Below are positions 33,328 to 63,975 of a stretch of DNA of 64,000 nt, piece by piece. The DNA is from Macrostomum lignano (lineage: Eukaryota), in contig NIVC01000201.1 of the NCBI GenBank assembly GCA_002269645.1, positions 310,001-374,000 on the forward strand, written 5' to 3'. The position numbers and the translations under genes were made by a program. Numbering within the stretch: the first letter of the stretch is position 1; each line of letters starts with the position of its first letter. The notes under the pieces are model-generated. The model saw only the letters and a list, made by a program, of their open reading frames with translations. It was not told the DNA's origin and ran no database searches.

Positions 33328-33381
33328 TAACCCTAACCCTAGCCTAACCCTAACCCTAACCCTAACCCTAACCTAACCCTA
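33328..33381 (-). repeat. Interstitial telomere-like (TTAGGG)n tract
   Basis: About 9 imperfect CCCTAA units, at the position equivalent to the tract in unit 1. Confidence 0.85.
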
Positions 33382-34239
33382 AAGCATTGAAATTTCAGTA
33401 ATTCTCTCTAAGAGTCATTATAGCACTACTACAGCATTATAGCGATTCCCTGCAAGCCTCAACATCGTAGGGATTCCCAAATGAATCTCTTAACTTCGAC
33501 ATGAAGCTTCTTTTATTTTTTACATTACGCTTTTTTATCAGCGATCCCTCCCCTGAGGAGGCATCAAATAATGTAATAAAAAGTTTTCAATAAACTACAT
33601 GTAGCTTCTGACTTTAGCCTTGAAATCTCATTTATACCCCGTGAGCCTTGACATCTCAGCTATTCCCCCCGTAAGCCTTGACATGTCAGCAATGGCCCCC
33701 ATAAACCTTGAAATCTAAAAAATCCCCTGTTAACCTTGAAACCCGATAAAATATAACCCTCAACCCACACCTGACCTAAACCTAACTTTAACCCAACATA
33801 AAGCCTTGAAATCTCAGCAATTCTTCTCCCCTAAGCCTTGACATTTTAGTGATTCCTTCTTTAAGAATAACAGCACTATAACGATTTCCACCAAGCTTTG
33901 ACATCGTAGCAATTCCCAAATGAATCTTTCAACTTCGACATGACTTTTCTTTTATGTATACATAGTGCTACTTTTATTTTTTACATGACTCTTCTTCTAT
34001 CAGCGCCCCCCCCCCGTGACATGAACTTTGAAGTAGCTTCTGACTTTTGCTTTGACATCTCAGAAACCCCCCCGTAATCTCAGTTATTCTCTGAGAGCCT
34101 TTACGTCTCAGTTTTTCTCCCCAGCACAGCATTATAATTGCATTTAATTTTTACATGAACCCTTCATGTCTGACATGACGTTTTTTATTCTACCGTGACG
34201 CTTCTTAATTTTTTAAATGACACTTTCATTAGTTTTTAA

Positions 34240-36665: not shown

Positions 36666-37281
36666 TTTTAAAAAGTCTTTTAGTTTTCCTGACGTTGAAA
36701 AGCTTTAATTAAAAAAATTATACTCTATGAAAATTCGAACCATCGTCGCTGCATTTAGCAGTTCAGTCTGTTTACCTCTAGGCTAGCTCTCATCGTTTTG
36801 ATAATCAAAATTTGCACTTATATAATTCAACACTTGAAAATCCAAGCATAGAGTAAATCACACGAAGCAGTTATGACATAATCAGTTTCTCAGTCAGTCA
36901 GTATCATTAACAATATGGTTACGCAATTTAAATCAAGTCTGGTGCTACGCTTCCACACTGCATTTTCAATTCAAGTCGGAGTTACAATTCAGTTATGATG
37001 CAATTCTATTTCAGAGTCAGAATTCAACCAGTCAGTTTTTTCTCTAGCCTTCTTACAATGCATTTCAAGTCGAAAGAGCTGCTTGACCTTTGCAAAAAAG
37101 CATGTTTTTCGAATATTTAATGCCTTTAGCATCGAGAATTTCTTAGCCACGATGCATGTACAGTCACGGAAAATTTTTGATCGAACAGTGCAAGTTAACA
37201 AAATCGGTCCAGCCATTTTTTCTCTAATCGATCACATAGATAGATAGACACAGACAGACCATTTTTAGTATATAGGAAGGA

Positions 37282-40200: not shown

Positions 40201-43200
40201 ACGCTTCTATGATTGTTTCATGACGCTTCTATGATTTTTACATGACGCTTCTATGATTTTTACATGACGCTTCTATGATTGTTTACATGACGCTTCTATG
40301 ATTTTTTTAAATAACTCTTTCTATGATTTTTAAATGACGCTTCTACGATTTTTTACATGACGCTTCTTTGATTGTTTACATGACGCTTCTATGATTTTTT
40401 ACATGACGCTTCTATGATTGTTTACATGACGCTTCTATGATTGTTTACATGACGCTTCTATGATTGTTTACATGACGCATCTATCATTTTTACATAACGC
40501 TTCTATGATTTTTACATGACGCTTCTACGATTTTTACATGACGCTTCAATGATTTTTTACATGACGCTACTATGAATTTTACATGACGCTACTATGATTT
40601 TTTACATGACGCTTCTACGATTGTTTACATGACGCTTCTATGATTGTTTACATGACGCATCTATCATTTTTACATAACGCTTCTATGATTTTTACATGAC
40701 GCTTCTACGATTTTTACATGACGCTTCTATGATTTTTTACATGACGCTACTATGATTTTTACATGACGCTACTATGATTTTTACATGACGCTACTATGAT
40801 TTTTACATGACGCTTTTATGATTTTTTACATGACGCTTTGATGATTTTTTACATGACGCTTCTACGATTTTGGCAGGCCGATTCTATGATTTTACATGAC
40901 GCTTCTATGATTTTTTACATGACGCTTCTATGATTGTTTCACGACGCTTCTATGATTTTTACATGACGCTTCTATGATTGTTTACATTCTTCTATGCTTG
41001 TTTACATGACGCTTCTATGATTGTTTAAATGACGCTTGAATGATTGTTTACATGACGCTTGAATGATTGTTTACATGACGCTTCAAGGATTTTTTACATG
41101 ACGCTTCTACCATTTTGGCAGGACGATTCTATGATTTTACATGACGCTTCTATGATTTTTACATGACGCTTCTATGATTTTTTACATTACGCTTCTATGA
41201 TTTTTACATGACGCTTCTATGATTTTTACATGACGCTTCTATGATTGTTTCATGACGCTTCTATGATTGTTTACATGACGCTTCTATGATTTTTACATGA
41301 CGCTTCTATGATTGTTTACATGACGCTTCTATGATTTTTACATGACGCTTCTATGATTTTTACATGACGCTTCTATGATTTTTACATGACGCTTCTATGA
41401 TTTTTTACATGACGCTTCTATGATTTTTACACGACGCTTCTATGATTGTTTACATGACGCTTCTATGATTTTTACATGACGCTTCTATGATTGTTTATAT
41501 GACGCTTCTATGATTGTTTACATGACGCTTCTATGATTGTTTCATGACGCTTCTATGATTTTTACATGACGCTTCTATGATTTTTACATGACGCTTCTAT
41601 GATTGTTTACATGACGCTTCTATGATTTTTTTAAATAACTCTTTCTATGATTTTTAAATGACGCTTCTACGATTTTTTACATGACGCTTCTATGATTGTT
41701 TACATGACGCTTCTATGATTTTTACATGACGCTTCTATGATTGTTTACATGACGCTTCTATGATTGTTTACATGACGCTTCTATGATTGTTTACATGACG
41801 CATCTATCATTTTTACATAACGCTTCTATGATTTTTACATGACGCTTCTACGATTTTTACATGACGCTTCAATGATTTTTTACATGACGCTACTATGATT
41901 TTTACATGACGCTACTATGATTTTTTACATGACGCTTCTATGATTGTTTACATGACGCTTCTATGATTGTTTACATGACGCATCTATCATTTTTACATAA
42001 CGCTTCTATGATTTTTACATGACGCTTCTACGATTTTTACATGACGCTTCTATGATTTTTACATGACGCTACTATGATTTTTACATGACGCTACTATGAT
42101 TTTTACATGACGCTACTATGATTTTTACATGACGCTTTTATGATTTTTTACATGACGCTTTGATGATTTTTTACATGACGCTTCTACGATTTTGGCAGGA
42201 CGATTCTATGATTTTACATGACGCTTCTATGATTTTTACATGACGCTTCTATGATTTTTTACATTACGCTTCTATGATTTTTACATGACGCTTCTATGAT
42301 TTTTACATGACGCTTCTATGATTGTTTCATGACGCTTCTATGATTGTTTACATGACGCTTCTATGATTTTTACATGACGCTTCTATGATTGTTTACATGA
42401 CGCTTCTATGATTTTTACATGACGCTTCTATGATTTTTACATGACGCTTCTATGATTTTTTACATGACGCTTCTATGATTTTTACACGACGCTTCTATGA
42501 TTGTTTACATGACGCTTCTATGATTTTTACATGACGCTTCTATGATTGTTTATATGACGCTTCTATGATTGTTTACATGACGCTTCTATGATTGTTTCAT
42601 GACGCTTCTATGATTTTTACATGACGCTTCTATGATTTTTACATGACGCTTCTATGATTGTTTACATGACGCTTCTATGATTTTTTTAAATAACTCTTTC
42701 TATGATTTTTAAATGACGCTTCTACGATTTTTTTACATGACGCTTCTATGATTGTTTACATGACGCTTCTATGATTTTTTACATGACGCTTCTATGATTG
42801 TTAACATGACGCTTCTATGATTGTTTACATGACGCTTCTATGATTGTTTACATGACGCATCTATCATTTTTACATAACGCTTCTATGATTTTTACATGAC
42901 GCTTCTACGATTTTTACATGACGCTTCAATGATTTTTTACATGACGCTACTATGATTTTTTACATGACGCTACTATGATTTTTTACATGACGCTTCTATG
43001 ATTGTTTACATGACGCTTCTATGATTGTTTACATGACGCATCTATCATTTTTACATAACGCTTCTATGATTTTTACATGACGCTTCTACGATTTTTACAT
43101 GACGCTTCTATGATTTTTTACATGACGCTTCTATGATTGTTTACATGACGCTTCTATGATTGTTTACATGACGCTACTATGATTTTTACATGACGCTTCA

Positions 43201-46200
43201 TGACGCTTTGATGATTTTTACATGACGCTTCTACGATTTTGGCAGGACGATTCTATGATTTTACATGACGCTTCTATGATTTTTTACATGACGCTTCTAT
43301 GATTGTTTCACGACGCTTCTATGATTTTTACATGACGCTTCTATGATTGTTTACATGACGCTTCTATGATTGTTTACATGACGCTTCTATGATTGTTTAC
43401 ATGACGCTTCTATGATTTTTACATGACGCTTCTATGATTGTTTACATGACGCTTCTATGATTTTTACATGACGCTTCTATGATTTTTACATGACGCTTCT
43501 ATGATTTTACATGACGCTTCTATGATTTTTACATGACGCTTCTATGATTTTTACATGACGCTTCTATGATTTTTACATGACGCTTCTATGATTTTTACAT
43601 GACGCTTCTATGATTGTTTACATGACGCTTCTATGATTGTTTACATGACGCTTCTATGATTTTTACATGACGCTTCTATGATTGTTTACATGACGCTTCT
43701 ATGATTTTTACATGACGCTTCTATGATTTTTAATGACGCTTCTATGATTTTTACATGACGCTTCTATGATTTTTACATGACGCTTCTATGATTGTTTACA
43801 TGACGCTTCTATGATTTTTACATGACGCTTCTATGATTGTTTACATGACGCTTCTATGATTGTTTACATGACGCTTCTATGATTGTTTACATGACGCTTC
43901 TATGATTTTTACATGACGCTTCTATGATTTTTACATGACGCTTCTATGATTTTTACATGACGCTTCTATGATTTTTACATACGCTTCTATGATTTTTACA
44001 TGACGCTTCTATGATTTTTTACATGACGCTTCTATGATTGTTTACATGACGCTTCTATGATTTTTACATGACGCTTCTATGATTGTTTACATGACGCTTC
44101 TATGATTTTTACATGACGCTTCTATGATTTTTTACATGACGCTTCTATGATTTTTACATGACGCTTCTATGATTTTTTACATGACGCTTCTATGATTTTT
44201 ACATGACGCTTCTATGATTTTTACATGACGCTACTATCATTTTTACATGACGCTTCTATGATTTTTACATGACGCTTCTATGATTTTTACATGACGCTTC
44301 TATGATTTTTACATGACGCTACTATGATTTTTACATGACGCTTCTATGATTTTTACATGACGCTTATGATTTTTTACATGACGCTTCTATGATTTTACAT
44401 GACGCTTATGATTTTTTACATGACGCTTCTATGATTTTTACATGACGCTTCTATGATTGTTTACATGACGCTTCTATGATTTTTACATGACGCTTCTATG
44501 ATTGTTTACATGACGCTTCTATGATTTTTACATGACGCTTCTATGATTGTTTACATGACGCTTCTATGATTGTTTACATGACGCTTCTATGATTTTTACA
44601 TGACGCTTATGATTTTTACATGACGCTTGATGATTGTTTACATGACGCTTCATGATTTTTTACATGACGCTTCTACGATTTTGGCAGGACGATTCTATGA
44701 TTTTACATGACGCTTCTATGATTTTTACATGACGCTTCTATGATTTTTTACATTACGCTTCTATGATTTTTACATGACGCTTCTATGATTTTTACATGAC
44801 GCTTCTATGATTGTTTCATGACGCTTCTATGATTGTTTACATGACGCTTCTATGATTTTTACATGACGCTTCTATGATTGTTTACATGACGCTTCTATGA
44901 TTTTTACATGACGCTTCTATGATTTTTACATTCTATGATTTTACATGACGCTTCTATGATTTTTACATGACGCTTCTATGATTTTTACATGACGCTTCTA
45001 TGATTTTTACATGACGCTTCTATGATTTTTACATGACGCTTCTATGATTGTTTATGACGCTTCTATGATTGTTTACATGACGCTTCTATGATTTTTACAT
45101 GACGCTTCTATGATTGTTTACATGACGCTTCTATGATTTTTACATGACGCTTCTATGATTTTTAATGACGCTTCTATGATTTTTTACATGACGCTTCTAT
45201 GATTTTTACATGACGCTTCTATGATTGTTTACATGACGCTTCTATGATTTTTACATGACGCTTCTATGATTGTTTACATGACGCTTCTATGATTGTTTAC
45301 ATGACGCTTCTATGATTGTTTACATGACGCTTCTATGATTTTTACATGACGCTTCTATGATTTTTACATGACGCTTCTATGATTTTTACATGACGCTTCT
45401 ATGATTTTTACATGACGCTACTATGATTTTTTACATGACGCTTCTATGATTGTTTACATGACGCTTCTATGATTGTTTACATGACGCTTCTATGATTGTT
45501 TACATGACGCTTCTATGATTTTTACATGACGCTTCTATGATTTTTACATGACGCTTCTATGATTTTTACATGACGCTTCTATGATTTTTACATGACGCTA
45601 CTATGATTTTTACATGACGCTACTATGATTTTTACATGACGCTACTATGATTTTTACATGACGCTTATGATTTTTTACATGACGCTTCTATGATTTTTAC
45701 ATGACGCTTCTATGATTTTACATGACGCTTCTATGATTTTACATGACGCTTCTATGATTTTTACATGACGCTTCTATGATTTTTACATGACGCTTCTATG
45801 ATTTTTACATGACGCTTCTATGATTGTTTACATGACGCTTCTATGATTGTTTACATGACGCTTCTATGATTGTTTACATGACGCTTGATGATTGTTTACA
45901 TGACGCTTTATGATTGTTTACATGACGCTTCTATGATTTTTACATGACGCTTCTATGATTGTTTACATGACGCTTCTATGATTGTTTACATGACGCTTCT
46001 ATGATTGTTTACATGACGCTTCTAGGATTGTTTACATGACGCTTCTATGATTGTTTACATGACGCTTCTATGATTGTTTACATGACGCTTCTATGATTGT
46101 TTACATGACGCTTCATGATTTTTTACATGACGCTTCTATGATTTTTACATGACGCTTTATGATTTTACATGGCGCTTCTATGATTGTTTACATGACGCTT

Positions 46201-47642
46201 CTATGATTGTTTACATGACGCTTCTATGATTGTTTACATGACGCTTCTATGATTGTTTACATGACGCTTCTAGGATTGTTTACATGACGCTTCTATGATT
46301 GTTTACATGACGCTTCTATGATTGTTTACATGACGCTTCAAGGATTTTTACATGACGCTTCTACGATTTTGGCAGGACGATTCTATGATTTTACATGACG
46401 CTTCTATGATTTTTACATGACGCTTCTATGATTTTTACATGGACGCTTCTATGATTTTTACATGACGCTTCTATGATTTTTACATGACGCTTCTATGATT
46501 GTTTACATGACGCTTCTATGATTGTTTACATGACGCTTCTATGATTGTTTACATGACGCTTCTAGGATTGTTTACATGACGCTTCTATGATTGTTTACAT
46601 GACGCTTCTATGGATTTTTACATGACGCTTCTACATGACGATTCTATGATTTTACATGACGCTTCTAGATTGTTTACATGACGCTTCTAGATTGTTTACA
46701 TGACGCTTCTACATGACGCTTCTATGATTTTTTACATGACGCTTCAAGGATTTTTTACATGACGCTTCTACGATTTTGGCAGGACGATTCTATGATTTTA
46801 CATGACGCTTCTATGATTTTTACATGACGCTTCTATGATTTTTTACATGACGCTTCTATGATTCTATGATTTTTACATGACGCTTCTATGATTTTTACAT
46901 GACGCTTCTATGATTGTTTCATGACGCTTCTATGATTGTTTACATGACGCTTCTATGATTGTTTACATGACGCTTCTATGATTTTTACATGACGCTTCTA
47001 TGATTGTTTACATGACGCTTCTATGATTTTTACAGGACGCTTCTTTTTAAAAAGTCTTTTAGTTTTCCTGACGTTGAAAAGCTTTAATTAAAAAAATTAT
47101 ACTCTATGAAAATTCGAACCATCGTCTCTGCATTTAGCAGTTCAGTTTGTTCACCTCTAGGCTAGTTCTTATCGTTTTGATAACATCAAATTTTGCACTT
47201 ATATAATTCAACACTTTAAAATCCAAGCAGTTATGACATAATCAATATCCAGTCAGTCAGTATCAGTTAACAATATGGTTACGCAATCTAAATCAAGTCT
47301 GGTGCTACGCTTCCACACTGCATTTTCAATTCAAGTCGGAGTTACAATTCAGTTATGACACAATCTATTTCGGAATCAGAATTCAACCAGTCAGTTTTTT
47401 CTCTAGCATTCTTACAATGCATTTCAAGTCGAAAAGTTTGCTTGACCTTTGCAAAAAAGCATGTTTTTCGAATATTTAATGCCTTTAGCATCAAGCAATT
47501 TCTTAGCCACGATGCATGTACCGTCACGGGAAAATTTCTGATCGAACAGTGCAAGTCTCATGAAAATCGGTTAAGCCATTTTTTCTCCAATCGATTACAA
47601 GCAAGCAAGCAAGATTTTCATTTTTAGTATTTAGGAAGAAGA
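37282..47642 (-). mobile_element. Non-autonomous Helitron, unit 3
   Basis: CTAG at 37282-37285 abuts unit 2. Its 5' end A|TCTTCTTCCTAAATACTAAAAATG is at 47642, so the trimer sits in an A|T target. Confidence 0.8.
37440..47045 (+). repeat. 21-22 bp minisatellite, array 3 (about 9.6 kb) with higher-order structure
   Basis: Same consensus. Recurring variant blocks include TTGGCAGGACGATTCTATG and AAATAACTCTTTCTATG. Confidence 0.95.
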
Positions 47643-48769: not shown

Positions 48770-51700
48770 GCATCAGCAAGCAAGCAGCCCAGACCTGCCC
48801 TACACCAGGCCCCATTTTTGCACCTGTTGGACCAGGTAAAATATGGCCGCAATCTGCCAGCCCTGCTGTGCCAGCGACCCACGCAGACCATCTGCAACCT
48901 GTCAGAGACTGAGCTGCTCCACGGGCCCGAGTTCTCCAGCATGCGGCTGCCGTTTCAAGTCGGCAGCAGTGCAGGCAGCAGTGCTGATGGTCCCGAATCC
49001 AGCTGGCCCATCCAGCTGCTGTCTATGGCCGAGTTTTCCAGCTGCCTAGCAACTCAGAAGAGCCCCCACCAGAGCACCTGGCTGTATGCCTCCTATATCT
49101 ACCTGCACCCGGGTGCGTCTCCTCCGGACCCTCAGCTGGCCAAGATTCGCGAACGCATCGATTGGTCTGGTCTGGGCTTTGACAGAGGCTTGGCAGCCTG
49201 CGGCAGCACGCTGTGGATTGGGGGTCCAGGGTCCAAAACCAACCTGCACTATGACGCTTATGGTTACAATATTGTGTTTCAGGTTTGTTTAACACCTTTA
49301 ATATAGCTTTAACACCAGTGATATCATGCTCAATCATTATTTGGCATTCTGGACTTGAACAATTCCATGCGAAATAAAAGTCAAGGTGACCAATACTTGC
49401 ATCACGTAAAATTCTATTTGCGACCAATTTTCACTAGGGGAAGGGGAAGCTGGCATCGCAGGCACAGAGTCCGCATATCGATGCCATAAAAGACTTGAAT
49501 TGTTGTGTGACGTGTTCCACTATTAATTACTACCTACCGGAGTGTTTCACTATTAATTACTACCTACCGGAGTGTCCCACTATTAATTACTATCTACCGG
49601 AAGTGTTCCACAATTAATTAATATCTACCGGAAGTGTTCCAAAAGTAGTTACTACCTACCGGAAGTGTTACAATTAATTACTACCCACCGGAAGTGTTCC
49701 ACAATTAATTACTATCTACCGGAAGTGTTCCACAGTTAATTACTACCTAATGGAGTGTTCCACTATTAATTACTACCTACCGGAAGTGTTTCACAATTAG
49801 TTACTATCTACCGGAAGTGTTCCAAAAGTAGTTACTACCTACCGGAAGTGTTACAATTAATTACTACACATTGGAAGTGTTCCACAATTGATTATTACCT
49901 ACTAGAAGTTTTCCTAAGTGATTATTGCTAACCATTTTCTCTCGGAAACCCAGGTGTTTGGCAGCAAACGATGGACCCTCTACCCGCCTGAGTCCAGCCA
50001 CCTGCTCAGGCCTACCCGGCTGCCATTCGAAGAGTCCACCATCTTTTCCCGTCTGTCCGCCCCCGCCTCCGTGCCAGAGGCGCGGCCTCACAGCGTCACC
50101 CTGGAGCCCGGCGACCTGCTGTACGTGCCGCGCCACTGGTGGCACCGGGTTGAGTCCCTGGGCGACTCTGCCAGCTGCTCCGTTAACCTGTGGGTGCCGC
50201 TGCCTCACCTGGACGCCGCCTCTCGGCTCGGCGAATCCCTCGCCGGCCTGATGGTCCGCCTGCTCAGCTCGGCTCCGGCCGCTGCCCAGCTGCTTTCAGA
50301 GACGCGCTGGCGCTGCCGGGACGAGTCGGACAGGCGACACTGGAGGCGGCTGACTGGCGGCGCCGACGTCTGGGGACCCGGCGAGCTGAAGCGGGACCTG
50401 GCGACTGCCCAGGAGGCGGCTGCGGCTGCTGCGGATGCCGAGGCTGAAGCGGCGTCTGACTGCGACTGCGACTGCCGACTCTGCGGCACCGGGGACCAGG
50501 TAGGACTGGCAGTTGACTGGCAGACTGGCAGCCCTCTGCCTGCTCCTGACACCCTCTGCCTACTCCTGACACCCTCTGCCTGCTCCTGACACCCTCTGCC
50601 TGCTCCTGACACCCTCTGCCTGCTCCTGACACCCTCTGCCTGCTCCTGACACCCTCTGCCTGCTCCTGACACCCTCTGCCTACTCCTGACACCCTCTGCC
50701 TACTCCTGACAGCCTCTGCCTACTCCTGGCACTATCTGCCTACTCCTGACACTATCCGCCTACTCCTGACACCCTCTGCCTACTCCTGGCACTATCTGCC
50801 TACTCCTGACACTATCCGCCTACTCCTGACACCCTCTGCCTACTCCAGACAGCCTCTGCCTACTCCTGACACCATCTGCCTACTCCTGACACTATCTGCC
50901 TACTCCTGACACCATCTGCCTACTCCTGACACTATCTGCCTACTCCTGACACCATCTGCCTACTCCTGACACCCTCTGCCTACTCCTGACACCCTCTGCC
51001 TACTCCTGACACCATCTGCCTACTCCTGACACCATCTGCCTACTCCTGACACCATCTGCCTACTCCTGACACCCTCTGCCTACTCCTGACACCATCTGCC
51101 TACTCCTGACACCATCTGCCTACTCCTGACACCCTCTGCCTACTCCAGACAGCCTCTGCCTACTCCTGACAGCCTCTGCCTACTCCTGACACCTCTGCCT
51201 ACTCCTGACACCATCTGCCTACTCCTGACACCCTCTGCCTACTCCTGACACCCTCTGCCTACTCCAGACAGCCTCTGCCTACTCCTGACACCCTCTGCCT
51301 ACTCCTGACACCATCTGCCTACTCCAGACAGCCTCTGCCTACTCCTGACACCATCTGCCTACTCCTGACACCATCTGCCTACTCCTGACACCATCTGCCT
51401 ACTCCTGACACCATCTGCCTACTCCTGACACCATCTGCCTACTCCTGACACCATCTGCCAACTCCTGACACCATCTGCCTACTCCTGACACCATCTGCCT
51501 ACTCCCGGCGCAGACATCCCCTTCATTGTAGCTACTTTGAATTCTGCCAACCAATCAAACACTTCTAAGTTATCTGGTGCCGGCCCTACTCCACATCACC
51601 GCAGTCTGTATCGGAGTTTGTTTCTGCCTCCGGCGTCACCGTAGCGTCCCTGAGTCCAGACGCGGCGCCCGTCACTTCGCCACCAGCGCTTCGGCAGGGG

Positions 51701-51807: not shown

Positions 51808-51904
51808 GATTGAGCTGATTAATGACCAAAATGCGCGTGATGAGGTTTGTCAATCCTCTACCATTGCCACTCCGTTACTCTGCCCTGTTACTGTTCTGTC
51901 CTTC

Positions 51905-52830
51905 TCACTGCTGTTTTTTGCGACTGCTCCTTCTTGTCACTGCTCCTTCTTGTCACTGCTCCTTGTCACTGCTCCTTCTTGTCACTGCTCCTTCTTGTCA
52001 CTGCTCCTTGTCACTGCTCCTTCTTGTCACTGCTCCTTCTTGTCACTGCTCCTTGTCACTGCTACTTCTTGTCACTGCTACTTCTTGTCACTGCTCCTTG
52101 TCACTGCTCCTTCTTGTCACTGCTCCTTGTCACTGCTACTTCTTGTCACTGCTACTTCTTGTCACTGCTCCTTGTCACTGCTACTTCTTGTCACTGCTCC
52201 TTCTTGTCACTGCTCCTTCTTGTCACTGCTCCTTGTCACTGCTACTTCTTGTCACTGCTACTTCTTGTCACTGCTCCTTGTCACTGCTCCTTCTTGTCAC
52301 TGCTCCTTCTTGTCACTGCTCCTTCTTGTCACTGCTACTTCTTGTCACTGCTCCTTGTCACTGCTACTTCTTGTCACTGCTCCTTGTCACTGCTCTTTCT
52401 TGTCACTGCTACTTGTCACTGCTTCTTGTCACTGCTACTTCTTGTCACTGCTCCTTCTTGTCACTGCTCCTTGTCACTGCTACTTCTTGTCACTGCTCCT
52501 TGTCACTGCTACTTCTTGTCACTGCTTCTTGTCACTGCTACTTCTTGTCACTGCTCCTTGTCACTGCTACTTCTTGTCACTGCTACTTCTTGTCACTGCT
52601 CCTTCTTGTCACTGCTTCTTGTCACTGCTACTTCTTGTCACTGCTTCTTGTCACTGCTCCTTCTTGTCACTGCTACTTCTTGTCACTACTTCTTGTCACT
52701 GCTACGTCTTGTCACTACTCTATCCTTGTCACTTCTATATTCTTGTCACTGCTCCTTCTTGTCACTGCTTCTTGTCACTGCTACTTCTTGTCACTGCTTC
52801 TTGTCACTACTCCTTCTTGTCACTCCTTTG
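51905..52830 (+). repeat. Composite minisatellite of TGTCACTGC-based units of variable length
   Basis: Units such as CTTCTTGTCACTGCTC and CTTGTCACTGCTA. It lacks stops on the plus strand, producing spurious ORFs. Confidence 0.9.
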
Positions 52831-54159: not shown

Positions 54160-54460
54160 ATATAATTGATAATAGTAATTGATTACACCTGCCTAATGGG
54201 CAGATGTGCAACCGACAGCTCAGCCGCAGCTATTGCGCGGCGCATCTGAAGGCTGCATACGGCTGTTCAGTCCAAGGACTGGGGGGTCGCCACACACACC
54301 TTCAATTACCCCAGCTAATGCTGGTGCCCATTTTACAGCTGAGTGAACTGAAGCAGTGCAGAGTCTTGTTCAAGTACACAAACTGCTCCAGTGGGATCGG
54401 GAATCGAACCCCTGACCTTCAAGTTGTGAGTCAGCGCTTTAACCACTAGGCTACAACACA
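54160..54460 (-). mobile_element. tRNA-derived SINE
   Basis: Minus strand: A-box TAGCCTAGTGG, B-box GGTTCGATTCC, then a body containing TTCACTCAGCTGTAAAATGGGCACC typical of metazoan SINE cores, and an AT-rich tail. The acceptor stem is not intact. Confidence 0.75.
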
Positions 54461-54705: not shown

Positions 54706-57700
54706 TTAGTATCCGTACCCTCCGCTCCGGTACTGACCGCCCATGCCTTGTTGCTGCTGCTGCTGCTGCTGCTGCTGCACTCTGGGAGTGGCGCTGTAGA
54801 TGTCGCTGTAGCCCTGCTGCTGCTGCTGCTGCTGCTGCGGCTGTGTTGTAGGATTGTAGGGCGCGTGTGCCGGGCTCCTGGGCGCATTGCCGGCTGCAAT
54901 AATGGCCGTTGGCGTTAATTCAGATAGGAGGTCAGGTGTGTGTCGCGCTTGAATAATTATGGATGACAATCAAGCTCTTATTGGCGAAAGCTTTTCCGCA
55001 CTTTTAGAAACAGCTGTTGATGCCATAAAACCACAGATACTAAAATAACTAGATGGGCCACTCAGAGAAATATACTTAGTAAAACAGCTTTTTACTTTCA
55101 GTTCAGTAGCAAAGAAGAATACATAAGCTATTTTATAAAGATAAAGGCAGGGGCCCGTGCTATAGAATACTCTTAACTCCTAAATCCTTAAGAGTGTCCT
55201 AACTCCTAGCTCCTAGCTGGCTTTTCTGTGCTATAGAATCAAGAGTCAATTTTAAGAGCTAGGAGGCTCCTTAAGGACGTTAGGAGACTCCTTGGTGAAT
55301 TTAGGAGAACTCATTAAGGTTTGTCGCGTGCTATAGAATAAGGAGCGGAGCGTAGGAGCTAGGAGCTAGGAATTGCCGTTTAGGAGTGAGTTTTAGGAGT
55401 GCGTGTCCTATAGAAGGAGCGAAACTCATTTCTAGCTCCTAACTCCTAGTTAGGACTTCAAGGGCCAAATTTCACTCTTAGGTTATAGTAGGATCGTGTG
55501 ATTCGTTTCTTTTTTCATGTTTTCGGACAGTGAGCTAGGCTCGGACGATGAGGGAGCTAATGATCGACGACCCAGACAATTTAAGCAGAGGATTAACTTT
55601 TTTGAAGAATATAATACTGTGTCACGATTTCGGCTCAATGAGAATCAACTCGCTAGCCTGACGAATCGAATTCGAAATCGAATTGAACACCGAACTGGTT
55701 GTAACTATGCTTTAAGTGCCGAGCAGCAAGTGAGGCTTTCGATTCGCTTTTTGGCCAAAGGAGCAGACTATAGAACGATTGGAGATGCACATGGAGTCTC
55801 AAAAAGTAGTGTTTTCTACGCTTCATCGCTTTAACAAACGCAACTTTTTGGTTTGCTTGCATTGTTTGAATTCACGAATTGCTCCTATAGTTACTCCTTA
55901 AGGTGCGTACATTTAGGAGTTTATTATAGCACGCAGATTGGCAGACTCCTTAGCCAATCGCCTTACACTCCTTAGAACTCCTCACTCCTATGCTGCACTC
56001 CTTAAAACAACTCCTAGCTCCTACTCTTGATTCTTGAACTCTATAGCACACAAAATCGATTCGCTCCTTGCTAGGAGCACTCCTGACTCCTAACTCCTTA
56101 CTCTTTGCTCTTAAATCTATAGCACGGGCCCCAGATGAAATGACTGATAAGTTTAGAAGCCCACAAGCTTGCAGGCGTAAACAACTTGCTAATTGGTTCA
56201 GCAATAATGTACATTAGCCAGTCCACTGAAATGTACATACGAGCGCACCAGCTTTAGGCTGGAATTCCGAAGAAAGGCAATAAAATTGGGGCGGGGCGGG
56301 GGTAGTGTGAAAAGGAGCCGTTCGAGGGTTTATGCTGGGAGTAAGAGGCAATAAAATGAGCCATGGCTTTAAAAATACATTAAAATGCTTCTGTTTAACT
56401 TACTACTGAACTGAAAGTAGTTTACACGCAAATGTGCTGAGTGGCCTATTTAGTTATTCTTCTAAGTTCTAAGTTTCAAAGCATTCTAAGTTATTCTTAG
56501 AATCTGTGCATAAAACTGAATTCCCAGTTAAATAAAGAAAATATGAATGATCGTAATTTTTTGAACAAATATGCAAATTTAAAGCCTGTGCCATGCTGAG
56601 ATGCCATGCTGAGATGCCATGCTGAGACTGCCTACGCAAGCCTAACTTGCAAGAAGTCCGCAGCTTAAAGATTTTAGTAGTGAAATTATCAGAGGAAAGC
56701 GGGAAAGAAATTGAAACTGATCGAACATGGCCTGGCATTTCTACTGTTGAACGTGAAGCCCTCACCCTGCATGGCCTCCATGTTCAGCCGGCTGCTGGAG
56801 TTCTCCCGATGCTGCGCCAGCGGAACGCCGTGGGGCGCCAGGAAGTTGGAGTCGCCAGCCGGCAGGTACTGCTGCGGCTCCTCGTCGCGGTCGTTGGCCT
56901 CCATGGCGCTGGGCGGTACGCCCTGCAGTTTGGACTCGCGCCAGTAGAAATTCAGAGCCGCAAACAGCAGCATGACGATCGTGCTGGCGAAACCGTAGGA
57001 GCGGAGCATGCTGTCGGAGCCTGCGGGTTCGGTTTCGCAGCGATGTGCGAGCGTGGGGCGCCTTTCTAATGTACATCGAAGTTGGAAAATGGAAAAATAT
57101 TCACTGTGGAGACAGGAAAAATTCATGTTTTTTTTCATAAAAATCAGTGATATTGAATTTGATTTGGGGCGGTGATGATTAACCTGTGTTTTAATCTAGC
57201 ATGCACTGCATGTTAGTCTGTGTGCTTGCTAAATTAAAGAGGTGGCAATCTTCACTGCCACAGATCAAATGAAATCAGTGATTTGGTGATGAAAAAGATT
57301 TTTCCTGGATATTGGCCTCCAAAAAACGACACGATCGTTGAGAGTTTTACGTCCTGTTATGCTTCAATAATTCTTGAGTACATACACCCTGTACATGCAT
57401 GGGCTCAAGCGATGAGTAACATGGGCGTGTGCCCGCCCGCCCGACTCCTCCAACTCACCGTATTTGGCCGTGACCAGCCCGCCAAAGATGGCGCCAAGCC
57501 CGCGGCCCAGGCCGTGATGAACGCCCTGCAGGAGGCCCTGCGAGGCGGGCCGGGCCTCCACCGGGATGTTCTGAGAGATGTAGGAGCAGACGGCGGCCCA
57601 GGTGGCGGCGTGCGTCAGGCCCTGCAGGAACTCGAACGGCAGGACCCACCAGGCGCGCTCGACCCAGGAGACGAACAGGAAACGGCAGATGTTGGCCAGG

Positions 57701-59827
57701 AGGCCCAGGTACAGCACCCGGATGTGACCTGAGGCGAAAAGGCGGATTTTTAAACTGCAAGGTCTTTGCCTGGGAGGTGCATCATCCGAGGCACACAGTG
57801 TGCATGCATTGACAAGGGTCCCAGGGTGCCCGCAACCCCCCTGCAATAGTAATTATTTATATTTACTGTCCCTTCCTACCGATGGAGTTGATCAGCTTGT
57901 CTGAGTGCATGTAGGCCAGCAGCTCGGAGATGTGGTTCACAATGGAAGCCGCGCCGAACAGGGTGGGGCCGCCGCCGATGTCCTGCAGGTGCCAGAACAG
58001 CAGCGAGAACACGATGCCATTGCCGATGCCCATGAAGAAGGTGACGAATAGAAAGGCGCCAAGGCGCGGGTTCAGGTAGACCGGCAGGACGCGAATCCAG
58101 GTGCGAAACTGCCAAGTGGCGCCCTCAGTGCTGTAGGGATTCTGTTGCTCCTGCTGCTTCTGTGGATCCCCTGGCTGCTGCTGGTGCTGCAGGCCGTGGA
58201 TGCCCAGCTGCTGTTCCAGAATTTGCTCGTCTGTGCCTTTCATGGACTGCCCACCGGGCTCCTGCGGTAGGGGATTGGCACAGTGTGAGGTTCGGTGAAA
58301 CATGGGGACAGGCGCCCGGCGGAAGAACTGAAAACAGTAATTTTAATTTAATCAAATCCCGTCTTCCTACCTCGGGCAGCGGCTCCGGATTTCCCTCCTC
58401 GTCCAGCCTCCCGCGATCCTTCATCGTGCGGCCGCGATTAATGACCGAGTCGCGAAATTTGTCCTTCATCACCTTCAGGTACATCTGCTCGGAGCCGGCG
58501 CCTCCGGGAGCGTCATTGTCAAAGCTGGTGGATTTTTTTAAAGAAAAAAGTACGGAATTGAATTTTTGGGTGGCTAAATAATATTCTCAGTGGAAAGTCA
58601 GATTGCAAACAGCTAAGTGAAAAACCGGAAGTTGGTTTTGAGTAGCTCAAATGAGGAGCCGGAAGTTGGTTCGGAGTAGTTCAAATGAGGAACCGGAAGT
58701 GGGTTTTTGAGTAGCCAATCAATAAACCGGAAGTGGCTTTTTGAGTAGCCAATCAATAAACCGGAAGTGGATTTTTGAGTAGCCAATCAATAAACCGGAA
58801 GTGGCTTTTTGAGTAGCCAATCAGTAAACCGGAAGTGGGTTTTTATGTAGCCAATCAGTAAACCGGAAGTGGCTTAGCGGCATTTCGGAACTCACTGGAA
58901 CTGAGTCGAAACCGCCAGAGCGCACAGCATGAAGAGGGTGAAGGTGGCGAAGCACATTATGTAATTCTTCTCCCTCTCGGCGGGGAAGCGGCACGGGTGC
59001 TTGAAGAAGGTGGTGCTGAGGTCCAGCCCGATGCCGACGATGAACATGGCGATGCCCCAGCCGATGCTGCCGAACATCCGCTGCCGGCCGTAGTTCTCCG
59101 ACTTGCCCTCGATGGCGGCCTGGGTGGCGATGTCGGCCAGGCTGTTGGCCGGCGCGGAGGTGAACTCGCCGATGATCATGAGGAACAGGATGATGACGAA
59201 GGCCTTGCCGATCTCGGCAGTCGAGTACACCACGGTGGAGTAGCGCGGCATCGCCAGGCCCGGCTGGCCGGCCTTGTCCAGCATGATGGGGTTCTCGCCC
59301 ACCATCTGCGACCAGCGCTCGTGCGGATTGTTGATGATGCGCTTCCGCTGGCTCAGCGCGATGTCGAAGTCTCCGGCGACCACCACCTCGGTGGATCGGT
59401 TCTCCGACTCCACCAGGCAGCCGAAGGGCGCCGGGTTGACGATGGCGATGGCCACGGTGAAGATGAGCCAGCAGGCGGTGGACACGATGAGGATGAGGCG
59501 GCATTTGCGCCACTTCTCCGCCAGGCCGGTCCAGAACGGGGCGGCGAAGAACTGGATGAGCGGTCGGATGCCGATGAGGGTGCCGGCCTGAGCCGCGTTC
59601 ATGCCGAGCTGCTTAAAGTACACCGCCATCAGCGGGTAGACGGAGCCGAAGGCGGCGAAGAAGAAGAAGTAGAACAGCTTGTAGATGCTCAGCGACTTGT
59701 CGAAGTAGCCCCCAAGGAAGCGCAAAAATTCGTTGGCGCGCTGGCCGCGGTTCTGGCCTTCGGTTGGCTCGGCGGCCGGCAGCGGTACCTCGTGGGGCAG
59801 CGGCTCGTCCGTGGGGACCGGCTGCAT
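54706..59827 (-). CDS. MFSD6: Major facilitator superfamily transporter, MFSD6 homolog, 6 exons, about 748 aa
   Basis: Exons 59827-58896, 58524-58371, 58327-57880, 57728-57459, 57020-56766, 54893-54706 (2247 nt, in frame). Motifs KLFYFFFFAAFGSVYPLMAVYFKQLGM, YGRQRMFGSIGWG, LFWHLQDIGG, IG|HIRVLYLGL and LQGLTHAATWAA. Gln-rich C-terminus. Confidence 0.88.
55047..56455. mobile_element. Inverted-repeat element hosting the Harbinger insertion, in the last MFSD6 intron
   Basis: AACTAGATGGGCCACTCAG (55047-55065) pairs with CTGAGTGGCCTATTTAGTT (56437-56455). TACTTTCAGTTCAGTAG (55093-55109) pairs with CTACTGAACTGAAAGTA (56403-56419). Confidence 0.6.
55151..56131 (+). mobile_element. Non-autonomous PIF/Harbinger deletion derivative, 981 bp
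   Basis: TIR GGGCCCGTGCTATAGA / TCTATAGCACGGGCCC and 3 bp TSD CAG on both sides. ORF 55517-55834 (FRL...ALSAEQQVRLSIRFLAKGADYRTIGDAHGVSKSSV) matches the N-terminal HTH of HARBI1-type transposases; the DDE domain is missing. Confidence 0.88.
58620..58875 (+). repeat. About 34-35 bp intronic minisatellite
   Basis: Unit AAACCGGAAGTGGCTTTTTGAGTAGCCAATCA(A/G)T. Confidence 0.9.
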
Positions 59828-61923
59828 CTTAGCGGCTGCTGGTTTGATGTCCGTGGAGATCTGGCGGGCAGCTGTCTCAGAGCAGGGAGCGGCAAGCGGG
59901 GAGGACTTCTTCTAGACTCAACCGGAGAGTTTATGCCGAGGGCGCGGTGAGATGGAGAAAAGGGGAAGAGGCTGGGGGTTGCCGAGGATGGGATGGGATG
60001 GGAGAGGCGGCCGTATTGATTCTGAACAGGGCAGGGCGGGTCGGAGCTGCGAGAAGGCGGAGGAGGGCGGGAAGGAAGAGACGGGAAGAGAAAACTTTTG
60101 CGGCGGGGCAGAAGCTCTCGGTGGCTCTCAAGAGAGGCAGAGCGCTGGAACAGCTACTCAATTCTGCATCTCCTCCCAGCCTCCCTGTCCGCAGCCCGGG
60201 TAGTGCGGATTTCATTGGCTCCAGCGCGCCTCCCCCTTTCCTACTCCGGCGGCTTCCTCATCATCCGCGGACAGAGCTGAGCAGAGTGCTCAGATTTCTT
60301 CCCTATCCCGCCGCCGGCAGCGCACAGCCAACTCCGACGTACTTCTATCGGCCGCGCGCAGCGATCGACTTGGGCTGCAGGCAAGCCGGAGTGCGGAGGA
60401 GGCGGAGAAACTGAAAACTCACTGAAAACTGGGGAGTCAGACGGCTTATCCGCCTCGCATCCTTCGTGCACTGCGACTCGGCAGCTGCAGGCTCTGAGGA
60501 TTTGCTGCTCAGGATGTTGGGATTTTTGGCAAGAAAATTGAGGAAGCTGCGAGCGGATCTGTTGGCAGATCAGCATATCTGTACCAATATTTGTAGCTCA
60601 TTTTTCGTAATTTATAAATAGAATTAATTTGAATTATTGTCGGTCTATGCAAACTTATATGTAAGTGCAGATAAAAAGTTACCAAAAGACCAAGGGCCCG
60701 TTCTATAAAGCCATCGTAAGATAAGATCGTAAAAGTACGTACGATCGAACTTACGCTACGACAGCTTTACAGTACGACCCCCAAGTCAAGTTCATCAAAG
60801 TCATTTTAAATACCAGACTCATTCGTTTCTGTGCATTTCCCTCATGCTCAAGCTGCCCTGTCAAGTGCCAGTTAAGTCTTCGCAGATTAGACTGAATTTT
60901 ATGCACTTTAGAGATGGCTATGTTCAACTTGGGTTGGATATCGGGGCTACAATTGTACTTGACAAAACACCGACATTGTCACACAACCGGCGAGAGGCGT
61001 TACTGCCCATTCCGCCGACTCCCCATCAGCAGGCACACAAGCGCGCGGATACGTCCGCCCCAGTCATATGCACCGACACACTCACACGGGAGTGCACAGC
61101 GGCCCTGACTTTAGTTATCGTTAGGCATGTACACTTCACTGTGCCTGGCACTCAAGGCCTTAAATATGCACGAGCAGAGCCAAGCCGAGATTGCTATTTA
61201 GCCCCAACTGACTGCACTTGACTGGCCCAGGCTGCCTACGCTCGTAAAAGCGCCGCAAAAGAAAGGTGATTTCTGTATATAGAGGTGATTTTACAGTCCC
61301 ATCGAGTTGCATCTAAGTACCTTTTATTATACATGTAGTTGCATGCAAAAATGAAACAATAATTTGGGAATGTCAAACTACGGGATGAGCATTTGACATT
61401 TGCCTACCAATACAGGACAACCATGCCCTCACCATTTTGCTCCGAAAATATTAAAAAGTTCCTATCCTGTCGAAAGTAACCTTTCTGAGACAAAGTGTTT
61501 AGTTCGACTTAGCAGTCCCTGATGAAACTCATAATTATCTGTAGATCAAAGGATCCACTACAAGATTTGATGCCTAATTGCAGAGACAGGAACTAAGTCT
61601 GCAAGAAAGATTTATCAGACATTTTTCCTATAATTATCTAGAGACTCGTACCTGCTCCCGCTGATGAGCAGATAGTTTCAGTGTCGCTCTGATCTCGAAA
61701 TCAAAGCATAATTAGAAGTCTTTTTAATCGCGTGTGCGCGACTTCATTCCGGAAGGAGACGTGAACTCTGGGATGACTGAATGTAAGCGATAGCTTACTG
61801 ATAGTAAAGCTATTTGAACATGGCGCGAATTCCTCACATGGTGGACTAGAAAATGTCGCCATGTGCAAGGGCGCATAAATAGCAGTTCCACTCAGTTGGC
61901 TAGAGGTGGAGCCGACCTCGTGT

Positions 61924-61976
61924 GGCTATGACTGACTGACGAGGGCAAACAAGCCCGAAACCGGTCTCAGTCTGCC
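61924..61976 (+). ncRNA. Type I hammerhead ribozyme, copy 1
   Basis: Stem I GACTGA/TCAGTC, core CTGACGA, stem II GGGC-AAACAA-GCCC, GAAA, palindromic CCGG, and GTC cleavage triplet (cut predicted after 61966). Confidence 0.9.
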
Positions 61977-62313
61977 CCGCATGGTTCGATTCCCACTTTT
62001 AGCCGCTGATATCTGGTTCCCTGCAGAGAGCGTACCCGCTGGCCACCCACAGGGTGAGAGCCGAAAAAAATGTGCGCACAAGACGTACAAGTGTACCCTC
62101 CGGCCGCCTAAAAATAGAAGGGCCGAGAAGGGAGAACTGGCAGGAGTGCCAGTCTTTGAAAAGCGGGAAGATGTAAGCGATAGCTTACTGATAGTAAAGC
62201 TATTTGAACATGGCGCGAATTCCTCACATGGTGGACTAGAAAATTTCGCCATGTGCAAGGGCGCATAAATAGCAGTTCCACTCAGTTGGCTAGAGGTGGA
62301 GCCGACCTCGTGT

Positions 62314-62366
62314 GGCTATGACTGACTGACGAGGGCAAACAAGCCCGAAACCGGTCTCAGTCTGCC
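62314..62366 (+). ncRNA. Type I hammerhead ribozyme, copy 2
   Basis: Identical to copy 1; predicted cut after 62356. Confidence 0.9.
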
Positions 62367-62703
62367 CCGCATGGTTCGATTCCCACTTTTAGCCGCTGAT
62401 ATCTGGTTCCCTGCAGAGAGCGTACCCGCTGGCCACCCACAGGGTGAGAGCCGAAAAAAATGTGCGCACAAGACGTACAAGTGTACCCTCCGGCCGCCTA
62501 AAAATAGAAGGGCCGAGAAGGGAGAACTGGCAGGAGTGCCAGTCTTTGAAAAGCGGGAAGATGTAAGCGATAGCTTACTGATAGTAAAGCTATTTGAACA
62601 TGGCGCGAATTCCTCACATGGTGGACTAGAAAATTTCGCCATGTGCAAGGGCGCATAAATAGCAGTTCCACTCAGTTGGCTAGAGGTGGAGCCGACCTCG
62701 TGT

Positions 62704-62756
62704 GGCTATGACTGACTGACGAGGGCAAACAAGCCCGAAACCGGTCTCAGTCTGCC
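62704..62756 (+). ncRNA. Type I hammerhead ribozyme, copy 3
   Basis: Identical to copy 1; predicted cut after 62746. Confidence 0.9.
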
Positions 62757-63093
62757 CCGCATGGTTCGATTCCCACTTTTAGCCGCTGATATCTGGTTCC
62801 CTGCAGAGAGCGTACCCGCTGGCCACCCACAGGGTGAGAGCCGAAAAAAATGTGCGCACAAGACGTACAAGTGTACCCTCCGGCCGCCTAAAAATAGAAG
62901 GGCCGAGAAGGGAGAACTGGCAGGAGTGCCAGTCTTTGAAAAGCGGGAAGATGTAAGCGATAGCTTACTGATAGTAAAGCTATTTGAACATGGCGCGAAT
63001 TCCTCACATGGTGGACTAGAAAATTTCGCCATGTGCAAGGGCGCATAAATAGCAGTTCCACTCAGTTGGCTAGAGGTGGAGCCGACCTCGTGT

Positions 63094-63146
63094 GGCTATG
63101 ACTGACTGACGAGGGCAAACAAGCCCGAAACCGGTCTCAGTCTGCC
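63094..63146 (+). ncRNA. Type I hammerhead ribozyme, copy 4
   Basis: Identical to copy 1; predicted cut after 63136. Confidence 0.9.
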
Positions 63147-63429
63147 CCGCATGGTTCGATTCCCACTTTTAGCCGCTGATACTGAAGCATCACAAATATT
63201 TTAGCTGTGCGGACTGGTTCCGTCATTTTACAAGCGCAGATATATGTATCTTCACTACGCCACTTTGATAAATTACCAATTTGAAATGCCACGATTTTGT
63301 GGCCGCTTGACTCCCTAAATTATTTTAAAATGAAATACGCCTTGGATAATAAACGCACCAAAATGAAAAGTGTATTTCATTAATTACCAAGCCAAGTCGC
63401 TAAGACATCTGCAGGCTATGAGCCCAGTG

Positions 63430-63975
63430 TCATAGCTGCAGCCGAACAGGTTCGTGCCCTGTGTCCGATAAAAACCCGACAAAGTCGGGCACAGACAGGG
63501 ACAAAGTGGCGGCATTGCAGCCCACCGGGTGGCAGTTCAGCTGTTCAGTTTCTGCCGGCTCCAGCAGCGCGGAGTCACACAGGAAGGTCACCAACTTAGC
63601 CGCATCGTTAGCCAAAGCCAGCGGAGTCACGCAGCCCTGCCTGACACCCAGCGTGTCTAACAGGGTCGGCTCCTCAGCCAGGCGGAAACTGCCAGCCGCG
63701 AGGCCAGCAGGTAGCCGCTTGTGCAGGTCCGACAGGCGGATTTGAGCGTCGTGACGAGCCGACAGCAGAAACAGCCGGCGCTTCTTGTCCTTGAGAAACA
63801 GATTCTTCAGGGTGCAGCCCGGCAGCTTGGCCACCGCCGGCTGCTGCAGCATCGCGTCCACGGTGAACACCTCATCGTGAGCCACTATGGAGTGGGAGAT
63901 GCCCAGCTGAGTCAGGTAGGCCGAGGTCTCCGAGCTGTGGCGGGCGATTGTGGCAGAGTCTGGTTGAAGCTGCAT
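63430..63975 (-). CDS. PRORSD1: YbaK/ProX-family aminoacyl-tRNA deacylase, PRORSD1 (PrdX) homolog, 181 aa, intronless
   Basis: Motifs HDEVFTVDAM, KNLFLKDKK, LGVRQGCVTPLALAND, HPVGCNAATLSLS and GHEP. Confidence 0.88.
   Translation of the reverse strand: MQLQPDSATIARHSSETSAYLTQLGISHSIVAHDEVFTVDAMLQQPAVAKLPGCTLKNLFLKDKKRRLFLLSARHDAQIRLSDLHKRLPAGLAAGSFRLAEEPTLLDTLGVRQGCVTPLALANDAAKLVTFLCDSALLEPAETEQLNCHPVGCNAATLSLSVPDFVGFLSDTGHEPVRLQL

Follow-up and report, generated by a model that had tools for sequence, protein, structure and literature searches.

A tandem hammerhead ribozyme array in Macrostomum lignano is probably a young retrozyme insertion

What kind of element is the short tandem array of hammerhead ribozyme motifs that lies between two genes of Macrostomum lignano, and how might it have come to be there? 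The question is raised by a 64,000-nucleotide stretch of contig NIVC01000201.1 (positions 310,001 to 374,000 of the forward strand; hereafter the window, in whose coordinates all positions are given), for which a first-pass annotation had proposed a four-copy array of type I hammerheads and, from it, a retrozyme. We consider it likely, with a probability of about 0.82, that the array is a genomic copy of a non-autonomous retrozyme of the kind without long terminal repeats (LTRs), the life cycle proposed below included. The assignment is made because all of the defining features that can be tested in sequence match those of published metazoan non-LTR retrozymes, which consist of tandem 150-450 bp repeats with type I hammerheads and have no LTR, primer-binding site (PBS), polypurine tract (PPT) or coding capacity (PMC7229834). 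Whether such a family had already been described was a question that the first-pass annotation left to a database search. The class has been: it has stood in the literature since 2020 (PMC7229834), with roots in 1986-87, a 2026 preprint deals with how it is linked to Penelope-like elements, and the array is a clean young example of it. In contrast, literature string searches with parts of the unit, together with the supplement of PMC7229834, returned no match to the family of the array itself.

The array stands as a block of its own, sharply bounded on either side by unique DNA. Its limits were set by Tandem Repeats Finder, in-register comparison, blastn and a repeat search, and the RNA monomers that self-cleavage would release were delimited by counting cut sites from the sequence:

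61781..63181, plus strand: whole tandem array
61967..62356, plus strand: RNA monomer unit 1, from cut site to cut site, 390 nt
62357-62746, plus strand: RNA monomer unit 2
62747-63136, plus strand: RNA monomer unit 3

Tandem Repeats Finder reported a period of 390 bp, 3.6 copies, 99% matches and zero indels. Thus, of the four-copy array proposed earlier the four hammerheads stand, while the array itself comprises 3.6 units rather than four, namely three full 390-bp units and a 231-bp partial unit (3.59 units) arranged head-to-tail. In-register comparison revealed a sole substitution in 1401 bp, at position 61855, where copy 1 has G and the rest have T; there is no difference between copies 2 and 3, and copy 4 matches over its 231 bp before stopping abruptly at 63181. 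Since there is only one difference in 1401 bp, the insertion appears to be young, and together with the sharp ends this upholds the earlier view of a near-identical, recent insertion. The flanks are unrelated to the unit: alignments of 400 bp from each side, on both strands, against the circularly permuted unit scored no better than those of shuffled flanks, and LTR, PBS and PPT sequences were absent at the array. Decayed older copies in the flanks were considered as well and rejected, as the local alignments did not rise above those of shuffles.

The two ends fall at arbitrary points of the unit, with the array starting 186 nt before the first cut and ending 45 nt past the last. Such arbitrary phases are expected from a polymerase that circles a circular or multimeric template and starts and stops anywhere, and they are also compatible with unequal crossing-over at a later time. 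The left flank ends in ...GGGATGACTGA (61770-61780) and the right flank starts with CTGAAGCATC (63182 onward); on reading the sequence, we found no A-rich tail at the 3' end of the array (63181). A short identity borders the array:

61776..61780, no strand assigned: left copy of a candidate target-site duplication, (A)CTGA, read from the sequence
63181..63185, no strand assigned: right copy of the candidate target-site duplication, (A)CTGA, where the A at 63181 could be the repeat's own

Both junctions have CTGA, extended to ACTGA when the A at 63181 is included, and an identity of 4-5 bp is short enough to occur by chance. It would fit a target duplication of that length with ...GATGACTGAAGCATC... 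as the empty site, for which the predicted sequence reads ...GGGATGACTGAAGCATCAC.... Very recent insertion and clear junctions with unique intergenic DNA make copies of this sort the best material for studying the priming and integration of retrozyme circles and the enzyme involved. Array phase and junctions can be read off directly, as can an empty allele, should other individuals carry one. As a separate observation, the 8 left-flank bases that abut the array (ATGACTGA, 61773-61780) are identical to the 5' strand of hammerhead helix I (61928-61935). An 8-base match of the ATGACTGA type somewhere in the 390-bp unit has a chance probability of ~1%, and it involves a part of the unit other than that at the junction; hence it does not constitute junctional microhomology.

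The ribozymes themselves are identical. The motif CTGACGAGGGCAAACAAGCCCGAAACCGGTC^TCAGTC occurs at 61936, 62326, 62716 and 63106, and its spacing of exactly 390 nt, like the complete core, is as the first-pass annotation had given it. The four hammerheads, located by cmscan alignment and motif search, and the parts of the first of them, for which base pairs were verified, are as follows:

61918..61990, plus strand: hammerhead 1, extended type I, predicted cut after 61966
62308..62380, plus strand: hammerhead 2, identical, predicted cut after 62356
62698..62770, plus strand: hammerhead 3, identical, predicted cut after 62746
63088..63160, plus strand: hammerhead 4, identical, predicted cut after 63136, with the end of the array 45 nt on
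61920-61925 with 61977-61982, plus strand: outer helix I of hammerhead 1, 6 bp
61926-61929 / 61973-61976, plus strand: internal loop of helix I, 4x4
61930-61935 with 61967-61972, plus strand: inner helix I, GACUGA/UCAGUC
61936-61942, plus strand: core CUGACGA (C3-A9)
61943-61946 with 61953-61956, plus strand: helix II, GGGC/GCCC, 4 bp
61947-61952, plus strand: loop 2, AAACAA
61957-61959, plus strand: GAA (G12-A14)
61960-61965, plus strand: helix III palindrome, ACCGGU
61966, plus strand: C17, with the predicted cut directly after it

Read in the standard hammerhead numbering (summarised in PMC6155905), all 11 invariant core positions are in place, as are G10.1-C11.1, A15.1-U16.1 and C17, and the four copies are alike in this respect. 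The ribozyme is of type I since helix I is the open helix. Base counting confirmed the C17 positions named earlier, and cleavage is accordingly placed, as a prediction from sequence, after 61966, 62356, 62746 and 63136.

An Infernal search against Rfam, proposed in the first-pass annotation as a check, was run with cmscan in two modes, at the curated gathering threshold (52 bits for Hammerhead_HH9) and then by E-value, and the two gave different answers. Whereas there were zero matches in the window at the gathering threshold, in E-value mode each of the four copies was matched over the full length of Hammerhead_HH9 (RF02275, type I) with 32.7 bits, the E-value being 7e-6 when the 2 kb region was searched and 2.3e-4 when both strands of the entire 64 kb window were. 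The four matches amount to one independent motif, as the copies are one duplicated sequence. In the alignment the 5-nt helix III loop of the model is deleted, which accounts for part of the shortfall in score. No other ribozyme was matched on either strand (E<=10 in the 2 kb region, E<=1 window-wide). HH9, an intronic type I hammerhead of amniotes, is thus the best-scoring model for the array ribozyme, with which it shares the core, a helix II with a 6-nt A-rich loop, and a helix I with an internal loop. In contrast to HH9, which is single-copy and intronic, the array ribozyme stands in a tandem, repetitive context and lacks the helix III loop. For annotation, this means that Rfam gathering thresholds miss hammerheads of the type found in the array. 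A loose hammerhead-pattern match 60 bp upstream of the array (61661-61720, plus strand; CTGATGAG...GAAA...GTC) was rejected, as it has no helix I or helix II pairing; the loose pattern is expected 1.45 times per window, and the match was judged to be chance.

How could a hammerhead with so little helix III act? Within GAA-ACCGGU-C, helix III amounts to one A-U pair closing CCGG, or else to two pairs over a sterically impossible 2-nt loop, and its forced closure within one copy is predicted thermodynamically to cost +5.7 kcal/mol relative to the open form. The ACCGGU self-duplex, on the other hand, is predicted at -9.7 kcal/mol and would provide a 6-bp helix III between copies. Folding of two neighbouring copies gave the same picture:

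61918..62380, plus strand: span from hammerhead 1 through hammerhead 2, whose unconstrained minimum free energy (MFE) structure is a double hammerhead

The unconstrained MFE of this span, -181.3 kcal/mol, equals that of the enforced double hammerhead, whereas two separate hammerheads, when enforced, reached -161.9 kcal/mol, 19.4 above it. In the double hammerhead, ACCGGU at 61960-61965 pairs with ACCGGU at 62350-62355, so that helix III joins the 15.x strand of one copy to the 16.x strand of the other. Both copies likewise contribute to each helix I, and the whole arrangement is fully nested in a tandem transcript. The array ribozyme is therefore predicted, from these folding models, to be of the 'dimeric' kind that works by pairing with a neighbouring copy. 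Because helix III consists of one base pair plus the CCGG palindrome, monomer transcripts should cleave poorly and dimers well, and it follows that a monomer transcript which failed to cleave would not refute ribozyme activity. In the account that PMC6155905 gives of Forster et al. 1988, this double-hammerhead architecture is described for newt satellite 2 and for avocado sunblotch viroid (ASBVd).

The remainder of the unit is also highly structured. As a linear RNA from cut to cut, the plus-strand monomer folded to -151.2 kcal/mol (z -5.96; 0/100 shuffles as good) and as a circle to -146.5 kcal/mol (z -5.5), with 65% of its bases paired. In contrast, the minus-strand monomer was much less structured (z -2.6). 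The monomer MFE structure keeps hammerhead helices I and II, the other ~320 nt forming a branched extension of helix I, and the hairpins listed in the first-pass annotation are present both in the sequence and in the predicted fold. In the same modelling, GACUG is predicted to pair alternatively with CGGUC, which would keep the core of the monomer inactive. With respect to coding, each unit holds open reading frames (ORFs) of 95 aa (plus strand, from ATG) and 108-110 aa (minus strand); equally long ones arose in 15-20% of dinucleotide shuffles, Pfam matches to the ORFs on either strand were absent at E<=1, and no frame stays open around the whole unit. The earlier judgement that the unit has no credible ORF is borne out by these results.

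Taken together, these features invite comparison with known hammerhead repeats. As in metazoan retrozymes (Cervera & de la Pena 2020, PMC7229834), each unit of the array is some hundreds of bp long and has a single type I hammerhead; mussel retrozyme units measure 350-390 bp and the array unit 390 bp. The RNAs of metazoan retrozymes are self-paired, about 170-400 nt long, and accumulate as circles in corals, mussels and axolotl (PMC7229834). Among retrozyme families, 75% have <=7 units per array and copies are enriched in intergenic DNA (preprint 10.64898/2026.07.22.740005), and the array resembles most of them in its few units and its intergenic location. Although its host appears to be an invertebrate, the array has a weak, palindromic helix III as in amphibian retrozymes, in contrast to the stable helix III of coral and mussel retrozymes. 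The likeness is closest in detail to newt satellite 2 and the axolotl ribozyme HHR_Amex1: in helix III a single base pair closes a palindromic tetraloop (A-CCGG-U), helix I is extended and has an internal loop, cleavage is predicted to need two copies, and the tandem units of newt and axolotl measure about 330-390 bp against 390 bp here. The likeness to these systems (Epstein & Gall 1987; Forster et al. 1988; PMC7229834) is one of architecture. Two index entries of the 1986 newt satellite 2 paper contain the 10-mer GAAACCGGTC, which may point to an identical helix III. Unlike newt satellite 2, the array has C at N7 (CUGACGA) and a non-amphibian host, and as far as the window extends it is a 3.6-unit block and not a genome-wide satellite. 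A weak palindromic, 'dimer-only' helix III is therefore not confined to amphibian retrozymes and Penelope-like elements. The kinship with newt satellite 2, Schistosoma Sm-alpha and retrozymes that was suggested earlier holds at the level of class features, with the reservation that helix III of the array cannot close in one copy.

By analogy, a life cycle may be proposed in which the array is transcribed, the RNA cleaves itself and becomes circular, and the reverse transcriptase of another element copies it. In the cycle put forward for retrozymes in general, oligomeric transcripts are processed by their own hammerheads, a tRNA ligase closes the products into circles, and reverse transcription of these circles gives tandem cDNA (PMC7229834). 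Applied to the array, the neighbouring hammerheads of a plus-strand multimeric transcript would pair through ACCGGU/ACCGGU and swap helix I strands, giving a double hammerhead with two active sites. A host tRNA ligase of the RtcB type would then close the monomers into stable, branched, highly paired circles; this ligase yields >80% circles in vitro, compared to about 3% by self-ligation (PMC7229834). The reverse transcriptase of an autonomous element, most likely Penelope-like, would copy the circle round and round, and the resulting multimeric cDNA would be inserted into the genome. Copying of a circle followed by insertion of a multimer would explain the 3.59 units, the arbitrary, sharp ends and the near-zero divergence between units. 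An autonomous element is the proposed origin of the reverse transcriptase in the published cycle too, with Penelope-like elements favoured (PMC7229834), and vertebrate retrozyme families group with Penelope terminal repeats (Li, Clavereau & Pollet, preprint 10.64898/2026.07.22.740005). Penelope-like elements are thus the probable source of the enzymes and perhaps also of the sequence.

Several observations weigh against the retrozyme assignment. The Hammerhead_HH9 score lies 19 bits under the curated threshold of 52 and, the copies all being identical, the locus provides no covariation support for the ribozyme. Unit GC content is 52.8% compared to <50% in published retrozymes (PMC7229834), a property that is descriptive rather than defining. 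The candidate target duplication is only 4-5 bp long, whereas those of metazoan retrozymes, if there are any, exceed 4 bp, and unequal crossing-over or gene conversion could also yield identical units. Within the 64-kb window, blastn found no further copy or fragment of the 390-bp unit, whether as a second array or as a solo monomer, and no plus-strand promoter of the array was identified. The partner enzyme that the first-pass annotation suggested looking for, a Penelope-like or other reverse transcriptase, did not turn up: neither such an enzyme nor a GIY-YIG domain was found by Pfam among ORFs of >=120 aa near or relevant to the array. Finally, an exact, family-specific hammerhead pattern had 0 matches in metagenome contigs.

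Could the array instead be transcribed from within, as a short interspersed element (SINE) is? The unit contains a possible element of an RNA polymerase III (Pol III) promoter:

61983..61993, plus strand: Pol III box B consensus GGTTCGATTCC, perfect match, 17 nt 3' of the cut

The box recurs at 62373, 62763 and 63153 and is thus present once per unit, with six matches in the window, four of them inside the array, compared to 0.2 expected. A TTTT run at 61997-62000 follows it after 3 nt, as at the end of a tRNA gene. About 90 nt upstream of box B, at 61891-61905, lies the 15-nt stretch CTCAGTTGGCTAGAG, which we take to resemble a tRNA D arm closely. Box B and the D-arm-like stretch together are, as judged from sequence, a possible internal promoter. 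These features raise the alternative that the array is a SINE-like Pol III element of the Sm-alpha kind, in which a tRNA-derived internal promoter drives transcription, the hammerhead trims transcripts that are multimeric or result from read-through, and an enzyme of the long interspersed element type copies linear RNA without a circle. Its precedent is Sm-alpha, a SINE-like element in which a Pol III promoter precedes a hammerhead and the element is found in tandem (Ferbeyre et al. 1998; PMC6765202; PMC2770079). Sm-alpha and Sj-alpha of Schistosoma (PMC6765202) resemble the array as short non-coding repeats, often tandem, with a type I hammerhead; cleavage of Sm-alpha releases unit-length RNA, as is predicted for the array, and both have possible Pol III elements beside the ribozyme. 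In contrast to Sm-alpha, only box B is convincing in the array, the 3' end has no A-rich tail, and helix III is not of the workable form seen in Sm-alpha hammerheads. No box A consensus was matched in the unit within one mismatch, and the Rfam tRNA model was silent on the array region (E<=10) and the window. ARAGORN called no tRNA in the window, even when the hammerhead was deleted in 1092 ways; this test is insensitive, because a nearby SINE-like head used as a control was also left uncalled. A TTTT in every unit would, moreover, limit Pol III transcripts to about 130 nt rather than multimers. On balance we regard the SINE-like explanation as unlikely, albeit the one that deserves attention ahead of the other alternatives.

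A quite unlikely explanation, in our view, is that the array is a remnant of a Penelope terminal repeat (pLTR) amplified locally by unequal crossing-over, and hence a satellite rather than an independently mobile retrozyme. Penelope-like elements carry hammerheads with a missing or minimal helix III that act as dimers and lie in tandem terminal repeats (PMC6155905; PMC7229834); the array resembles these terminal-repeat hammerheads (Cervera & de la Pena 2014; PMC6155905) in its type I fold, its nearly absent helix III and its tandem copies, and the preprint 10.64898/2026.07.22.740005 derives retrozyme families from pLTRs with expansion by unequal crossover. The Penelope motifs, however, are without extended helix I and loop contacts, whereas the array ribozyme has an extended helix I with an internal loop, which is the 'canonical' retrozyme type rather than the minimal Penelope type. 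Host genes and unique sequence lie beside the array, where the ORFs of >=120 aa that were scanned included none for a reverse transcriptase or GIY-YIG domain, and an array built up gradually by crossing-over should normally differ at more than a single position in 1401 bp. Far less credible is an ordinary minisatellite in which a chance string happens to look like a hammerhead without acting as one. Unrelated tandem repeats abound in the window, the Rfam score is under the gathering threshold and one loose hammerhead match nearby is clearly chance, yet this explanation must contend with a covariance-model E-value of 2.3e-4 for the whole window, a complete core, a helix I of 6+6 bp with its internal loop at the position of the model, a palindromic helix III that yields a double hammerhead as the unconstrained MFE structure, and a remaining unit that folds far better than shuffles on the ribozyme strand only. 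The most remote of the alternatives is a 'retroviroid', in which a viroid-like or deltavirus-like circular RNA able to replicate on its own has left a DNA copy in the genome. A small (390 nt), highly paired hammerhead unit would suit such an origin, and tandem copies longer than a unit are the product of reverse-transcribing a circle; against it stand the absence of an Rfam ribozyme on the minus strand (E<=10 in the region, E<=1 window-wide), the much less structured minus strand, the lack of ORFs above chance or of a delta-antigen-like ORF, and the type I fold with extended helix I, which is the animal genomic kind.

One further idea, which we rate as improbable, is that the unit joins a tRNA-derived SINE head to a retrozyme, an extended hammerhead having been inserted between a box A region and box B. 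With box B on the 3' side of the cut, cleavage would part it from the box A region. If the hybrid were real, Pol III would drive expression inside every unit and self-cleavage would fall between the promoter halves. The promoter would then be dead in a linear monomer, to be restored to working order solely in a circle or in tandem DNA. The unit would thereby have a built-in reason to travel as circles and insert as multimers, and there would be a mechanistic link between Sm-alpha SINE-like elements and retrozymes. A tRNA-derived SINE-like element is present elsewhere in the window, with a head at 54390-54459 (minus strand) and a non-tRNA body reaching to about 54280. Its head, GTAGCCTAGTGGTTAAAGCG...GGTTCGATTCCC, includes boxes A and B, carries one of the two box B matches that lie outside the array and was called by neither ARAGORN nor the Rfam tRNA model; the 12-mer GGTTCGATTCCC is common to this head and the retrozyme unit.

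The array lies in a 3.6 kb intergenic gap between the stop codon of an ORF for a ProX/YbaK-like protein and the start of an MFSD6-like gene:

57364-59827, minus strand: MFSD6-like gene, three exons (ORF scan)
63430-63975, minus strand: ProX/YbaK-like aminoacyl-tRNA editing protein (PF04073), single exon, 249 bp from the array

Both neighbours run antisense to the ribozyme strand. Owing to this orientation, read-through from the upstream gene carries the strand without the ribozyme, and transcription of the plus strand needs another source, possibly an internal promoter or divergent transcription from the GC-rich 5' region of the MFSD6-like gene. The best matches to the MFSD6-like exon were only 39-47% identical and came from mixed protostomes. 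The ProX-like protein was 99% identical to UniParc UPI0007A2BDAA (MetaClust only), all others being <=51% identical (fish, sea spider) and many of them bacterial; the gene could be horizontally acquired or fast-diverging. We read the host, with low confidence, as an invertebrate that is phylogenetically isolated from well-annotated genomes and has TTAGGG-type repeats.

Hammerheads with a comparable helix III were encountered in environmental DNA. The broad pattern CTGANGA..CGAAACCGGTC matched 38 viral and >=120 metagenome stretches, and 11/159 of the broad-pattern matches listed were well-formed type I hammerheads, compared to about 0.2 expected by chance. These share only the GAAACCGGUC-type helix III with the array unit, their helices and flanks being unrelated to it; given this excess in unrelated environmental DNA, the GAAACCGGUC helix III appears to be a recurrent solution. 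Five of the 11 belong to one family (…AGCCAC CUGAUGAGACCCUUAAGCAAGGUCGAAACCGGUC GUGGCU…), found on five contigs. Environmental contigs with GAAACCGGUC hammerheads include L062, L069, L081, L098 and L143 (metagenome Ga0116226 and others), as well as L078 and L063. A long-period repeat was present on only one matched contig (L071), with the hammerhead match outside it. The environmental GAAACCGGUC hammerheads are probably retrozyme or Penelope-type elements of uncultured eukaryotes.

Other repeats and mobile elements occupy much of the window at a distance from the array. A fragmented Helitron lies on the minus strand at 7682-17767, its frame broken into several ORFs:

12082-12885, minus strand: Helitron_like_N
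9451-10569 and 7682-8242, minus strand: PIF1 helicase pieces
14501-14917, minus strand: OTU protease domain
17267-17767, plus strand: ORF with an RPA-like OB-fold, at the Helitron

An intact 636-aa ORF at 2103-4013 (minus strand) had no Pfam match at E<=0.001 and gives the impression, though only that, of a domesticated or mobile-element transposase. Very large 23-bp satellites, with units ATGGTGGCTCTTTAATGTTTGAC and TTTTTACATGACGCTTCTATGAT, extend over 27389-29734, 31276-32483 and 34196-47044, the largest block comprising ~570 copies, and interstitial (CCCTAA)n telomere-like tracts lie between the blocks at 30779-30839 and 33327-33382. The satellite region looks subtelomeric or pericentromeric, a kind of region in which retrozyme multimers are enriched (preprint 10.64898/2026.07.22.740005). 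Minisatellites at 49512-49914, 50532-51505, 51899-52824 and 58622-58875 lie in and around a JmjC/cupin-like gene (exons near 48818-50589) and inside the MFSD6-like gene, and one GC-rich 20-mer minisatellite, CCCTCTGCCTACTCCTGACA, generates long spurious ORFs across its 49 copies.

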